From Salisapilia sapeloensis CBS 127946 (lineage: Eukaryota > Protista > Oomycota), in the NCBI GenBank assembly GCA_023334545.1, contig JAADVB010000043.1, positions 1 through 64,000 on the forward strand: DNA of 64,000 bases, given 5' to 3'. Position numbers and translations under genes: made by a program. Positions 28,743 to 35,636 of the stretch are shown piece by piece (within the stretch, counting starts at the first letter, position 1; every line of letters starts with the position of its first letter). Below the pieces are notes generated by a model that had not been told where the DNA came from, did not search any database, and worked only from the letters and a program-made list of their open reading frames with translations.

Positions 28743-31700
28743 ATGGTTGATAGTGGGCGTTCACGACTACCGCCTCAATCGGTCCCAGAAGATGAAGAGC
28801 TGTCCGAGTCGATCATTCGACCTATGCACCGCCGCAGTTCATCTGCAGGAGACACGGGAGGTATGGTAGGATTGTCTGGTCGTAGTTACAACGGCAGTCT
28901 GGAACGTGGCGATTTGGCAAGTGCTTTGGCACTCGAGTCTGGGCGACCGACGGCAGGCAGCGATGCTTGGTCCAGTGCCTATAGCGAACCCAGCAGGAGT
29001 AGCAACACAAGTGGACTTGGATACCGACCGTCGGATCGATCATGTATGCCAGTATTCTTGCATTAATAATTAATAGCTATGATTAATCGCTTGGATATTG
29101 TAGCGGTGCTATCCACCAGTCCTCCATTGCCCGAGGATAGCACAGTGACAGCAGAAGATGTGATTCGTGAGAGCATGGCTAGTAGTCGTAGCACAGCGTT
29201 ATATGCCGATCAGATGGACTTAACTCTAACTCGTCGGTCGGATGCGCTGTCCATGTCCATGTCCGGTCGATCCGACAGCTTCGCCTTCTCCTTTTCAAGC
29301 CGAGGAACCTTTCGGCGCAGTACATTGTCCGAGCAGACTTTTCGAGAATCAGAGCTCTTTGAACCCGAGCGTGAACTCTCCGATGAAGACCTGAGTAATG
29401 TCCTAAAGGCTCGGACAGGTGATAGTAAGCTCTTAGAAGTCACGAGTATTAAGGAAGAGGATGAAGAGGCTGTCAAGTATGAGAACGCTAAGAGTCGATG
29501 GGCGCAGCACGTGAAGCTCAAAGCCCAAAACTTTCTCTACAGCACCATGTCCGGGAAAACTCCGTCACCACCAACAAAGGCACACGATGCACCTGTGGCA
29601 GCTTCACCGGAGGCTCAGGAATGGGCTGAGAAACAAAAAGCGATCTTGTCCAAGAGTGGTGAGACGGGCGGATTCGACCTACCGATTCCTTTCGCAGGTA
29701 AGAATGTCGTTGGGATGGCCAAGTTCCAAAAGTGGAATCGATGGATGCACGATCAGTATCAGAGTAACATTGGCAAAGTCGTCCAGCGAGCTTTTAAAGA
29801 CGAGATTCAGATCGGAGGTGAGAAGATAGATCCTAAGGTCCTCATCGCGATTGAAGAAGTCGTAAAGAACCCACGGATGATGCGATACTATGCTGCTTGG
29901 TTGCAGACGACGCACGATGAGAGCAAGCTCTTTTTCCTCGCGTCCTTTGAAGAGTACAGGCAGTTCTGGTGCACCTTACGATCAAACTATCAGGAGCAAG
30001 ATGCATCCGTCGCATCATCTCGAAGTGGCGTCCACTTTTCCAAAGATGATGCGCTCCTCGTACGTAGCTTTGGTGTGAAAATCGCACAAAAGTACTTGAC
30101 CAAGTCTGCTCCTTTCCACATTGGCTTCGATCTCGTGAACTCGGACGTGTTACGAGCCATTAAGCGCGACTTGGCAACAGGCGGAGACCCGTCTTTACGT
30201 GCGTTCGATCGTGTCGCGACAAAGGTGAAGCGTGAGATGATGGAAACGTTTTCTCAGTTCCGTACTTCGGAGCTGTATGCCGAGATGCTGAGCTCGATCG
30301 ATCGAGAGGTGATTTGTCTAGAAGACATGCTGATGAACCAACGACTAGCGCACTTCTTCTGGGTCTTCCTCTTCCAACATGACTACCATCGAGAGCTTGC
30401 GCTTTGGGTCGAGATCGAGTACGACTTCAAGCCTGCCTACCGACAGTACATGACGCTGCTCAAGTCATCCAACAGACGAAAGGACCAGTATGAACAAGCT
30501 GCGTACTTGTGTCGAAAGCTCTTGCGGTACATATCTGCAAAATACTATCCTGGTGACGACGACATGAAGCGACTGGACAAGTCGCTCTCGACGTCTTGTG
30601 CGAAATTGCAGAAGGAGCAGGACGACATCTTGGCTCGCTTCAGTCTCATCCACTTGGAGCTGTACCAGCGTTTCATAACTAGTCGAGCGTATGCCGAGTT
30701 TGCTTTGTATAAAACACCTAGTGCAGACCAGGATGAGTCTATTGATGATCCCATGCGCCTCTCGCAGCTACTACTAGAGTACGGTCTACGTGCCCATCAC
30801 TGGCCAGATGCGTCTCGAGAGAACTTGAAGAAGCGATCGTTGGAAGTGCTGCATACTGCCAGAGGGTATGAAGCCCTTTGTGGCGTGCTGACGTTTGAAG
30901 GGATCCTCGTGCAGGACAAGATCGAGTTGAAACTTCGACAGCATCCGTTGGCACATGACCCTTCGCCGTTGACGATAGACAAGTCGATTAAAAAGTTCCT
31001 CGTTCCATGGAGTGAGGAAGAGGAAGTAGTGCTCCAAGCACCTAGTTGTCCACCTCCTTTAGCGTTTAACTTTCGCATGGGCGACGGATCTGACGATATG
31101 TTTGCTGCGACTGTTGTCATGTACAAACCAGCGCCGTTGCTGACGAAAGCACAGATGGAGAATGAAAAATTAGACCCGGAGAAAGGAAGTAGATGGATAC
31201 CGTATGGAGTCTGTATGATCTCCAAGTTTCCACTGGTAGAACTACTTCGGGAACGTGTTGCAGAAGCGTATGAATTCATTTTGGAGCTAGAGACGATTGC
31301 TGCTACGAAAGAGCAGAAAGGAAGTGGACCGGGAAGCTATCCGAACTTTATACTGGAGTCAAGTACCGAACCGTTCCGACTGGACAAGAAGCTTGTGTCG
31401 AAACTGTCGAGGTCTGTGTCAGCGGATAGTATCTCTCGCTTCCATCAGGCCACACCTGTGGCATTGGCGTCTGCTTCTCCTCAGTCGTGTATGTCGTTGC
31501 AGACATCGACGTCGATGCTCACGACGCTCCCGAGACTCGACTACTCCATCCGACTCTTGTTCGATTCGCTCGACGTACCTACTGTTCTCACTGCCTTTAC
31601 GTCCATTCTTCTTGAAAGTCGTGTACTTATCATTTCGTCCTACTACTCAGTCGTGATGAAAGTATGCGAGACATTGCGAGCACTCGTCTATCCTCTTCTG

Positions 31701-32306
31701 TGGCCACACGTCTTCCTGCCTATGCTTCCTAAAGAGCTTTTGCAGTACCTCGAATGCCCTACACCATTCATTATTGGTGTTGCAAGAGGTTTGTTGGATG
31801 AAGAGACAATGGACGATGTCTTGAACGATGACGTCGTGGTGCTGGATCTTGACAAGGGACGAATTGTGTCTGGAGAGATGCCATGCCCACTACCTACTTC
31901 CGTCCAGGACGTACTGAAAGAGTCACTGTTTGAATGTCTCAAGCCGAACGTGAGCAAAAGCGATCATGTGTTTGCCGATCACTTTCCAACTAAGCCTCAT
32001 GCGTTCCCTGAAATTGCCGTCCGTAGACTCTTCTACCGAGCCGTAAGATCTCTTATCGGCGAGTATGGTTATTACAGATATGTCTGGACGGACGAGTACT
32101 CAAAGCAGCGGACAGTCTTCTTTGATGAAGCGAGCTACCTCGCAGCATCTCCTGTTGATATGCGTGACTTTCGAACGTTATTCATTGCAACACAGGCTTT
32201 CAGTGAGTACATTGTGTCGTATTACGGCTTTGAAGATGAAATCGCGACCGTGAGGCGAGTAGAAAAGCGTTCGAGTAGTTCAGGTGCGAGTCCGAAACGT
32301 ACTTGA
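28743..32306 (+). CDS. RGS-RGS-DENN domain protein, two exons
   Basis: Intron 29045-29103. RGS-like YYAAWLQ..ESKLFFLASFEEY...IAQKYL...AP and LEDMLMNQ..FFWVFL..ELALWVEIEYDFK. uDENN AFNFRMGDG, cDENN ILLESRVLIIS...YPLLWPHVFLPMLP...LECPTPFIIGV, dDENN FIATQAFSEYI. Confidence 0.85.
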
Positions 32307-32424
32307 GGTACGAGTAGCGCGTACGTTGGTTAGAATGGTACATGTGCATTGTTTGACGTGCCAGAAAGATAAAGAGAAATACGTTTGATCGATGTTCGTT
32401 GTTGGATTTACTCGATCTATCGTG

Positions 32425-34661
32425 TTAGTGTCGTCGGAAGATCGTCAACGCGCAGACGATAGATGCAAAGATGGCAGTTGGTACAAGGACCTTGTAGCTG
32501 CGAGCAAGTTTCTTCTTCTCAACTGAAGCTTGTCCTAACAGTAGACTCTCGTCATCGAAAATGGACGATCGAGTGCGTTGGAAACGGCTGCGGTGCACGG
32601 GTGTCTGGACGGAGAGACCCATCTCCCGGTCAATGATCCGATAGAGCATCGCCACGACAGCTTTCCCGGAGTGTTTAATCATGGGTGTTTTGTTCCACTG
32701 CTTTGTACTGTCGGCGGACTCATCGCTAAACGTCTGGCCTTGTAGCATGACAGGCCGTTCTTGATAGCTCATCTCTTGTGTGGGTAAAAGGAGCTCTTCG
32801 CCTCTTTCAAAGTACGGAGCTAGGACGTTCGAGTCTGGTTTAGTGTTATTTGCAATCACATAGTCGATAACGTCATGACCAAGGTACGAAGACAAGATGT
32901 CCAATGTGTCGTGGAGAGAGTATCCGTCTGTCTGACCACACTGGGTAGCAACGTTGCTGACGTAGACTGTAGCTCCTGAACTACGTTGGATGGCATCTCG
33001 TATACCAGGTACCAGTAGAGGAGATATGATGGATGTGTAAAAGCCACCAGGACTAAGTACAATAATGTCAGCGTTCTCAATTGCTCGAACGGCAGGTGTA
33101 AATGCTTCTGCCGCTTCATCTTTCAGGAACACTCGCTTGATAGGAGCTTTCTTTTTCTCTGTTCCTGTGCTTTCATCTATAACGGTTGGACTCCGGACAT
33201 TCACCTCAGATTCAACGATCGAGCCATCTTCTAACTCCGCGCAAAGCTCCGTGTTTGCTAGTGTCGCAGGGAATACATTGCCGTGAAGGTTGAGAATGTC
33301 TGAGAGAGATGTGACAGCTTTATCAAAGCCGCCTTGAATATCCGTCAGTGCTGCCAAAAGTAAATTACCAAGGCTGCATCCGTCCATAAAGTTTTCTTGG
33401 AAACGATAGTTCATGAGCTTGTTCATTAATTCATCTACACAGCACGAGGTATAAGACAATTCGATGAGGAGAGGAGATGACTGTTATATTACCTGAATCC
33501 GACAACGCCACCATGCAGTTTCGGATGTCGCCAGGAGGAAGCATGCCGAGGTACTTTCGCAATACACCTGAATGTCTCCCAGAATCAAAGACTGTGCATA
33601 CTTGTAAGCAACAGAAACGTGTCAGCTATGAAAGAGTATGAAGTACCAGTGACAACGGCTGTAAGGTCGGCAGGGTAGTGTCTCAATTCTTTTAGCAGCA
33701 CTGCCAGACCAGTGCCGCCTCCCACAGCCACAATCTTCGGAACGACTTCCTGTTGCTCTGCTAGCTTTACAACTGGACCAAGTTCTTCAATAGCTGATAT
33801 CTATTTGCAAGAAATTTGAATGCTGTAATTCGATCCATACACGTAGCAGGAGAAAGATTATAATATACCTGAAAGTCCGATTGCTCACGTTCTTCCGTCG
33901 GCATCACATTAGCATATGTGCCATAAAGCTATTTAAATGGATTAATGGCTCAGCAATAGTGTATTTATATGAGTAAATAAGGAGTCCGGACTGACCATTC
34001 GGACGGTGATGAAGCCAGCTTGATTCGCTGCCTTAATTTCATAAAACGCTTTTCTGCCGACAAAGACAACAGCAGATGGTGGTAACATTAAACGCCTACT
34101 AATCTCTTTCATTGCGACAGTCAGCTGACTCACAGTCGGGTTTGCAGCTACACTAACGCTTTCCTGGAAGAAATCGGACAGTCCGAGTGTTTGGAGGCGC
34201 TCCAACTGCACTTCTCTTTTACCAATGAGCACGAGCCCCAGGCGATAGTTACTAGCTCTTAATTCCTCCAGCGTCTTGTTCGAGTGCTCGAATGGTTCAA
34301 TCGTCTGCGCTTCTGGAATTCGACTGGCGTAATAAGCATCGACGACCCTCGATCCAGCAGCCGAAGACAGCTTCCCATCCTTCACAAGGCTATCTACGAA
34401 AAAAGGGAAGCGTTCTCGATATCCGTACGCAGCGCGAAAAAGCTGAATGGCTTCCACAGCCTCACTTTCGCTCACAAATGCATGCTCCTCGACCAATTGT
34501 TGGACGCCTCGGTCGATGGCGAAGTGAGCGAGGGATCCCGTATGGTCATACAATACATCATCTAAAATCATGACAACAGCCTGTATTCTCCTCTTCTTGG
34601 GGTCTATTTGAAAGCTGTTCATTGTTTCATGTAGCTCATGCATAGAGATAGATGCTGCCAT
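32425..34661 (-). CDS. Fusion of a degenerate HAD-IA domain, a YvcK/GlmR (CofD-related) domain and a C-terminal TM helix; five exons, 662 aa
   Basis: Exons 34661-33996, 33928-33869, 33800-33647, 33591-33493 and 33434-32425 total 1989 nt with all introns GT-AG and frame-consistent. YvcK motifs [50 protein letters not shown]. Confidence 0.88.
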
Positions 34662-34817: not shown

Positions 34818-35636
34818 ATGGCCGAGCGCAGTGCGGCACAGGACGCGGTGATCAAGGTCTTGGTACTTGGAGATGCTGCCACGGGTAAAACGAGTATCAT
34901 CAAGAGGTATGCCTCCTTTGCAGTGAAAGAACAGAATCCCGTAGCAAATTATCATGGGGGTTTATCGAATAGATATGTTCATGATGCCTTCTCGGAGCAG
35001 CATCGAACGACTATCGGCGTGGATTTTGCACTGAAGGCTGTCACTGTGGATGGAACGACAGTCCGTCTTCAGCTGTGGGATATTGCAGGTACAATCTCTC
35101 CTTTGAAGGTGCTTCTACACTGGGTTTTAATGGAATCTGCATGCAGGTCAAGAGCATTTTCGAGCTCTAAACCGAGTACCACTACAGATATGAATCTTCC
35201 TGCTACTATATCTCTGATGAACTACTTGTAGGTGTACTATAAAGATGCACTTGGAGCTCTCCTCGTGTACGACATGTCTCGACCGGAAACCTTTGACAGC
35301 GTCTTGAAGTGGAAGCACGAGATTGACGCGAAAGTCGAGCTTCCGAATGAAAAGCCGCTTCCTGTGATCCTTTGTGGAAACAAATGTGACTTGGCGAATG
35401 GTGCGGACGCGACGGCATTGGATGAATTGTGTGAACAGCATGGATTTGCCGGGTGGTTCGAGACATCTGCAAAGGAGAATACGAACATTGAGGAGGCCAA
35501 CCGTGCACTTGTGACGAACATTTTGGAGCATCAAGACATTTTTGAAAAGAAGCTGCAGTCAAAGCGTACGGACACGGTCCGTCCATCGCAATCAGACTCT
35601 ACGAGTGCCCAATGCAGTTATTGCTGCACCTTTTAA
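34818..35636 (+). CDS. Rab GTPase, Rab32/38/29 family; four exons, 212 aa
   Basis: [19 protein letters not shown], family-diagnostic WDIAGQE, GNKCD, FETSAK, C-terminal CC. Exons 34818-34906, 34973-35088, 35147-35175 and 35232-35636. Confidence 0.92.

Follow-up and report, generated by a model that had tools for sequence, protein, structure and literature searches.

Among Rab activators the DENN proteins form the largest class, and a central question still to be answered is what recruits each member. Here we describe a gene of the oomycete Salisapilia sapeloensis CBS 127946 (assembly GCA_023334545.1, contig JAADVB010000043.1, positions 1 to 64,000 of the forward strand; this whole stretch of 64,000 nucleotides is referred to as the window) in which a DENN module is preceded by two RGS-homology domains, RGS1 and RGS2. 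From sequence comparisons and structural models, we regard it as evenly balanced whether the product is, taken as a whole, a DENN-family Rab exchange factor preceded by two tandem RGS-homology domains that do not act as GTPase-activating proteins (GAPs).

Parts of this organization are shared with several well-described groups of proteins. The Rab35 exchange factors DENND1A and DENND1B (connecdenn; structures 6ekk and 3tw8) resemble the oomycete protein in having the core DENN hallmark motif, which in the oomycete protein is followed by a borderline dDENN match and preceded by a probable uDENN-like region. Unlike the oomycete protein they lack RGS domains and have a clathrin/AP2-binding tail, whereas the oomycete protein has a lineage-specific insert in its core DENN (cDENN) domain and a uDENN region that is too divergent for Pfam. 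SNX13 and RGS1 have in common a long insert within the RGS domain and the absence of Asn88 (in the numbering of RGS4), which is His in SNX13 and Lys in the oomycete RGS1. SNX13, SNX14 and SNX25 are arranged as PXA-RGS-PX-PXC, whereas Pfam searches with the whole oomycete protein and with pieces of it revealed no PXA, PX or PXC domain; relative to SNX13, SNX14, SNX19 and SNX25 the RGS domain is duplicated and fused to a predicted Rab exchange factor, and it is only the RGS domain that resembles SNX13. The RGS domain of SNX13 is reported to bind Rab5-GTP and that of SNX14 to bind Rab9, Rab11, Rab32 and Rab38 in their GTP forms, and the 2026 preprint describing this asks whether further non-canonical RGS domains likewise bind Rabs (PMC13596360).

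D-AKAP2 (AKAP10) is similar in layout, with two consecutive RGS-homology domains that have no known G-alpha partner, and the likeness is one of layout; its C-terminus contains a protein kinase A-anchoring helix and a PDZ-binding motif, where the oomycete protein has the DENN module. For D-AKAP2, the RGS tandem is reported to bind Rab4-GTP and Rab11 (PMC2781703). The RH-RhoGEFs (p115RhoGEF, LARG and PDZ-RhoGEF) and an Entamoeba RGS-RhoGEF share the logic of an RGS-homology domain on the N-terminal side of a small-GTPase exchange factor. These have a single RGS-homology domain and DH-PH domains acting on Rho, whereas the oomycete protein has two RGS-homology domains and a DENN module predicted to act on a Rab, with no DH or PH match in Pfam; binding to G-alpha-12/13 is established for the RH-RhoGEFs and is hypothetical for the oomycete protein.

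Gene structure and domain layout

The coding sequence consists mostly of a 1075-codon uninterrupted open reading frame (ORF) at 29079-32306 on the + strand, and a 107-codon ORF directly upstream (28743-29066) supplies exon 1. A GT donor at 29044 and two in-frame AG acceptors can be read from the sequence, and the junction that is used is in frame. Contigs of runs X1 and X3 (100% identical) omit exactly the 60 nt from 29044 to 29103, bounded by GT..AG, and contain no further joint between 28600 and 32400. X1 and X3 are two samples from one study, and although the RNA status of public runs is a guess of the search tool, these two are taken to be RNA because the intron is removed precisely. The gene is expressed and has two exons (28743-29043 and 29104-32306) that encode a product of 1167 amino acids; residue numbers below are counted from the Met at 29079, and the number in the spliced protein is larger by 92. 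Since the contigs span all of the domains with only the 60-nt intron removed, RGS and DENN are on a single transcript, and the layout of two RGS domains followed by DENN that was originally predicted is borne out by the continuous ORF and by the one transcript represented in both contigs. The features of the gene are as follows.

28743-29043, + strand: exon 1 (100 codons plus one base), carrying the start codon and coding for a Ser-rich N-terminus; the X1 and X3 contigs use the donor GT at 29044
29044-29103, + strand: intron of 60 nt, GT..AG, phase 1, omitted in contigs from two samples
29104-32306, + strand: exon 2, the remaining coding sequence including the TAA stop; orthologues align from 'SPPLPEDST' on
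29104-29850, + strand: conserved N-terminal region (ORF residues 10-258), with invariant columns in an alignment of 13 orthologues
29853-30284, + strand: RGS1, SNX13-type RGS-homology domain with a long alpha4-alpha5 insert, from Pfam, PDB sequence and fold matches
30318-30701, + strand: RGS2, divergent RGS-homology domain, from Pfam across orthologues and paralogue mapping
30972-31148, + strand: probable uDENN (longin-like) region, recognized by its motif, without statistical support
31188-31856, + strand: core DENN, with the hallmark motif PLLWPHVFLPMLPKELLQYLECPTPFIIGV and a variable insert at about residues 740-800
32121-32213, + strand: dDENN, from Pfam (residues 1015-1045)

Sequence comparison shows an intact DENN core of high conservation. 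Pfam family PF02141 matches residues 800-926 with 111 bits (cut-off 23.4) and is found in 13 of 13 orthologues, and the best solved relatives are DENND1A and DENND1B, the latter (3tw8) matching the core at 4.5e-16 with a single sequence and at 1.2e-22 with a profile. An hhalign comparison with a Mucor uDENN-DENN-dDENN protein (probability 98.8%) gives an alignment beginning at about residue 704, and the cDENN domain is therefore taken to be complete, with a lineage-specific insert. The dDENN match is borderline in this protein (24.5 bits against a cut-off of 26.8) and is recovered in all 13 orthologues, with a best E-value of 3e-7. For uDENN, residues ~632-690 contain a motif of the appropriate type (FLVPW...LAFNFRMGDGS..FAATVVMYK), and a weak uDENN match in the paralogue P0049 (E 0.0038) maps to this same segment. 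The description of the module as a complete u/c/dDENN was thus slightly overstated, in that cDENN is strong and dDENN is consistent among the orthologues, whereas uDENN consists of a motif and one weak paralogue match. By homology, the module is predicted to be a Rab guanine-nucleotide exchange factor.

The segment N-terminal to RGS1 has no Pfam family above cut-off, and exon 1, which was queried separately from exon 2 in the family searches, has no Pfam match. Motifs that are invariant in all of the orthologues include SFS-SR-TFRRST-SEQ, ELFEPERELS, TSIKEE, AKSRWAQHVKLKA and KFQKWNRWM. The invariant Ser/Thr-rich and basic motifs are likely to be regulatory or phosphorylation sites, and the resemblance of the RRST site to a basophilic-kinase phosphorylation site suggests phospho-regulation of the exchange factor; phosphorylation at the basic and Ser/Thr motifs of the N-terminal 235 residues would then control the protein.

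The two RGS-homology domains

Both sequence matches and modelling identify RGS1 as a true RGS fold that is closest to SNX13. Pfam family PF00615 matches residues 259-402 with 38 bits, and the RGS domain of SNX13 is its sole significant solved sequence relative (2.6e-6 with a single sequence, 1.5e-5 with a profile), RGS8 being next in the PDB sequence search with an E-value of 0.11. In an AlphaFold2 model of residues 236-560 the mean predicted local distance difference test (pLDDT) score is 71, with the RGS1 blocks at 73-91. The top structural match of the RGS1 model is the SNX13 RGS domain 7wf6 (Z score 14.6, root-mean-square deviation 3.1, with 140 of 145 residues aligned); others include SNX25 (Z 12.7 and 12.5) and dozens of RGS chains with Z scores of 10-12.7, with many canonical RGS domains at 10-12.5. 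An SNX13 cluster also ranks first in an ESM Atlas shape search.

RGS2 is more divergent. At residues 414-541 the Pfam RGS match is only 16-16.7 bits (E 0.01-0.017), with all 117 profile positions spanned, and an RGS match at this position is found in 13 of 13 orthologues, with a best E-value of 3.3e-5. The best RGS stretch reported by Pfam maps onto RGS2 (residues 414-540) in the paralogues P0047, P0048, P0053, P0055 and P0059, with scores of 34-44 bits at this position in P0048, P0053, P0055 and P0059, and onto RGS1 in P0039, P0049 and P0054; two RGS stretches are reported in each of P0047, P0051, P0054 and P0059. A stand-alone model of RGS2 (pLDDT 73) matches the SNX13 RGS domain with a Z score of 8.9 over 113 residues, RGS4 at 7.8, Axin at 7.5 and SNX25 at 7.3, and a Foldseek search with it returns nothing at E < 1. 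Among solved structures, a profile search with RGS2 gives only chance matches (FosB and heme oxygenase), and a single-sequence search gives one chance match, a bacterioferritin. RGS2 is taken to be an RGS-homology domain because of the Pfam matches across orthologues and paralogues, and not from the fold search, and on this basis it is very probably a real, if divergent, member of the family. The two segments that the original prediction assigned to the RGS family thus differ against the RGS profile: RGS1 passes (38 bits against 23.9) and has the SNX13 fold match, whereas RGS2 is below the cut-off and its fold search is undecisive.

In the complex of RGS4 with G-alpha-i1, the RGS4 residues Asn88, Asn128, Asp163 and Arg167 contact the G-alpha switch regions. 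A HMMER alignment of RGS1 with RGS8 places the S-E-E-N motif at D280-E281-S282-K283, such that Asn88 is replaced by Lys283, and the loop Asn (Asn128) by Gly349. Among the 13 aligned orthologues S282 and K283 are invariant, and position 349 is Gly in most and Asn in Phytophthora, Plasmopara and Bremia; the Asp163 equivalent (E389) is variable, and the Arg167 equivalent (Gln393) is Glu in most. RGS2 has Y-H-R-E-L-A-L-W in place of S-E-E-N-x-x-F-W, with Glu439 at the Asn88 position, and the RGS2 domain of every paralogue has H-x-E-L-x-(F/L)-W with Glu at this same position; no conserved Asn is present in the Asn128 loop of RGS2 in the orthologue and paralogue alignments. Both motifs pointed out in the original prediction, HDESK and YHRE, are present and invariant in the orthologue alignment. 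Its observation that both domains lack the Asn of the E-E-N GAP motif is confirmed by the alignments with RGS8, orthologues and paralogues, which show the further G-alpha contact residues to be replaced as well, and its suggestion that these are not GAPs stands, as none of Asn88, Asn128, Asp163 and Arg167 is kept in either domain. Most of the replacements are invariant, and judged by these residues both are RGS-homology domains without a GAP signature.

A GAP-active RGS domain of the R4, R7, R12 or RZ type was also considered, and was rejected because the residues contacting the G-alpha switches are replaced.

An oomycete family and its genomic context

A word search with the protein identifies 38 proteins, and all those that are named are from oomycetes. 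The identities are 59% with Globisporangium ultimum, 57% with Lagenidium, 51-54% with Phytophthora, Plasmopara, Bremia and Peronospora, and 46-49% with Albugo, and no database protein exceeds about 60% identity. In the alignment of 13 orthologues the mean column identity is 56%, with long invariant runs in each domain. When 1.84 billion representatives were searched exhaustively with HMMER, a profile of the RGS pair found only 23 proteins at E <= 0.001, and all ten of the named matches that were looked up are oomycete proteins; the profile is narrow, and this result shows lineage restriction of this RGS pair rather than an absence of RGS plus DENN from other eukaryotes. Almost all of the full-length matches have RGS, DENN and dDENN. 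A word search with the paralogue alignment finds no RGS plus DENN outside of the oomycetes, only DENN-only proteins (Mucor and MADD), although it also misses known oomycete paralogues and is thus weak evidence. In an ESM Atlas feature search, the clusters joining DENN and RGS are oomycete only. There is no corresponding family in NCBIfam.

A maximum-likelihood tree contains three paralogue clades, two of which have 100/100 support, with the third recovered as two sub-clades beside the outgroup. Every clade has both Peronosporalean and Saprolegnialean members, and the triplication therefore predates the split between Saprolegniales and Peronosporales. These comparisons identify the RGS-RGS-DENN layout as that of an ancient, oomycete-wide family of three paralogues. 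The protein encoded in the window is positioned outside of a group containing Albugo, Phytophthora, Globisporangium and Lagenidium, for which the support is only 85/88; its lineage may be one with few proteins in public sets.

According to the original prediction, no characterized protein is known to combine RGS and DENN domains. We found no paper that joins the two in one protein, and the fusion is unmentioned in the oomycete G-protein papers and reviews that were checked. The domains are, however, already annotated automatically in databases, with several relatives carrying both PF00615 and PF02141 in the precomputed annotation of UniProt and NCBI, and other genes share the layout. It is visible in automatic annotation, and is unstudied as far as literature searches reach. 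Most of the relatives are called only 'UDENN domain-containing protein', and a single NCBI entry has the name 'RGS domain'. We also note that the Phytophthora ramorum paralogue P0049 is named by NCBI as 'DENN domain and WD repeat-containing protein SCD1'. Pfam identifies RGS, uDENN (weak), DENN and dDENN in P0049 and no WD repeats, and the SCD1 name looks like a mis-transfer.

The genomic neighbours include a gene for a Rab GTPase. The original prediction had pointed to a Rab32/38 encoded 2.5 kb away, and the downstream gene does match Rab32 and Rab38 in the PDB at 2e-35, followed by Rab7L1 (2e-23) and Rab10 (4e-13). An orthologue of this gene lies no more than 3 kb from an RGS-DENN orthologue in five of eight genomes, in the following arrangements.

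34818-35636, + strand, in the window: Rab32/38-type GTPase gene with introns, from PDB sequence matches
Window and loci L004 and L005: Rab32/38-type gene just past a HAD-YvcK gene, downstream of the RGS-DENN gene
Phytophthora sojae (L002:8859-10001): Rab32/38-type gene head to head with the RGS-DENN gene, 246 bp apart by gene calls
Bremia lactucae (L007:9031-10001): Rab32/38-type gene head to head with the RGS-DENN gene, 114 bp apart by gene calls

Two nested inversions would interconvert the two arrangements, and in Phytophthora sojae and Bremia lactucae one promoter may serve both the Rab32/38-type and the RGS-DENN gene.

The RGS-DENN gene of the window converges with the HAD-YvcK gene, which is on the minus strand (32306-32425), and only 118 bp separate their stop codons. 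The X1 contig (5800 nt) extends about 2 kb past 32400 and into the region of the HAD-YvcK gene, and the 3' ends may overlap.

Possible partners of the RGS pair

A plausible scenario is that the DENN module would activate a Rab, and that the RGS-homology pair would serve in targeting or regulation, placing or switching on the exchange factor by binding a GTPase loaded with GTP; most simply, the RGS pair would be a sensor of GTPase state. Given that SNX13 is closest, that the tandem layout is like that of D-AKAP2, that the family has three paralogues and that a Rab32/38 gene is nearby, we think that a Rab partner is somewhat more likely than a G-alpha partner. By analogy with these systems we tentatively propose that the partner is a Rab-family GTPase, which would make the protein part of a Rab cascade or a positive-feedback exchange factor. 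The Rab32/38-type protein is a candidate partner by linkage only, and is a lead rather than functional evidence. The link to G-alpha made in the original prediction is pure inference, and the Rab-to-Rab reading is at least as likely.

There are, however, a number of observations that weigh against a non-GAP RGS pair binding a Rab and acting on a DENN exchange factor. The lead of SNX13 over canonical RGS domains in the RGS1 comparisons is modest, at about 2 Z units, and SNX13 was first described as a G-alpha-s GAP. The rgRGS domains of RhoGEFs bind G-alpha-12/13 via other surfaces, and the loss of GAP residues is for this reason compatible with G-alpha binding. RGS2 is below the Pfam cut-off of 23.9 bits in this protein, and generic helical (four-helix) bundles match its model equally well, with Z scores of 7-9.3. 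Similarity between RGS1 and RGS2 is not seen by hhalign (probability 0.5%), and a duplication would be missed because the profiles are too shallow (Neff, the effective number of sequences, is about 1.8). The uDENN family PF03456 is unmatched by Pfam in all 13 orthologues. No Rab32/38-type orthologue is present within 10 kb in Lagenidium, Albugo and Aphanomyces, and the linkage elsewhere lies within a generally syntenic block (syntaxin, E2 enzyme, TAZ-like gene, RGS-DENN and HAD-YvcK), such that it may be residual synteny. Finally, the Rab-binding data for the SNX proteins rest on a 2026 preprint (PMC13596360).

It appears unlikely that the RGS domains instead act as effector-type sensors that bind activated G-alpha (GPA1 in oomycetes) and thereby bring in or activate the DENN module, which would make the protein an 'RH-RabGEF' coupling receptor signalling to vesicle traffic; such a family could control regulated vesicle release in zoospores. 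The RGS fold of RGS1 is confirmed by both Pfam and the model, and there is precedent for joining RGS to an exchange factor, with the RGS1 model matching the PDZ-RhoGEF rgRGS domain in complex with G-alpha-13 (3cx7, Z 10.5) and the Entamoeba RGS-RhoGEF (4gou, Z 11.0); rgRGS domains lack the canonical GAP residues yet bind G-alpha, and the Phytophthora, Bremia and Plasmopara orthologues do have Asn at the Asn128 position of RGS1. However, neither domain, in this protein or in any paralogue, retains Asn88, Asp163 or Arg167, Asn128 is Gly here and in most orthologues, and the nearest relative by both sequence and structure is SNX13 rather than the R4 or R7 RGS domains or rgRGS. Moreover, if Phytophthora has a single G-alpha, three ancient paralogues would share one partner. 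The probability remaining after Rab and G-alpha belongs to autoinhibition of DENN or to another partner, and it is similarly doubtful that the RGS pair is an autoinhibitory module, or a scaffold for a non-GTPase partner or membrane, with the DENN module switched by phosphorylation of the N-terminal Ser/Thr motifs. The RGS domain of Axin, which binds APC, is an example with a non-GTPase partner and is among the good structural matches of RGS1 (7y1p, Z 11.9; 1emu, Z 11.4), and DENND1 and DENND3 are autoinhibited by other regions. Conservation is also very high across the whole domain rather than on one recognizable face, and the N-terminal RRST-type motifs are invariant. No specific partner of this kind is positively indicated, though, and the characterized classes that are nearest in sequence or layout (SNX13/14 and the tandem D-AKAP2) bind GTPases.

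An artefact of annotation or assembly, in which two adjacent genes are read as one, or a role for RGS2 as a mere helical linker, is highly improbable. RGS2 does score under the Pfam cut-off here, with no PDB sequence match at E up to 10 (chance matches aside) and a fold search that is not decisive. The ORF is nonetheless uninterrupted, transcript-like contigs cover all of the domains with only the 60-nt intron spliced out, over 40 oomycete proteins share the layout, which recurs in three paralogue clades, and in five paralogues RGS2 scores higher than RGS1. A fusion artefact was rejected from the uninterrupted ORF and the spanning contigs.

Two RGS-homology domains are fixed onto a DENN module in three paralogues across the oomycetes, among which are major pathogens of crops and animals. 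We know of no precedent for a direct link from a G protein to a Rab, and if the RGS pair binds G-alpha, it would provide such a link within one protein, from heterotrimeric G-protein signalling to Rab activation and parallel to that of the RH-RhoGEFs. If it binds GTP-Rabs, the protein would amount to a naturally hard-wired Rab cascade or feedback exchange factor, and would give independent evolutionary support to the recent claim of SNX-type RGS domains as Rab-binding modules. A concrete first candidate is provided by the nearby Rab32/38 gene.

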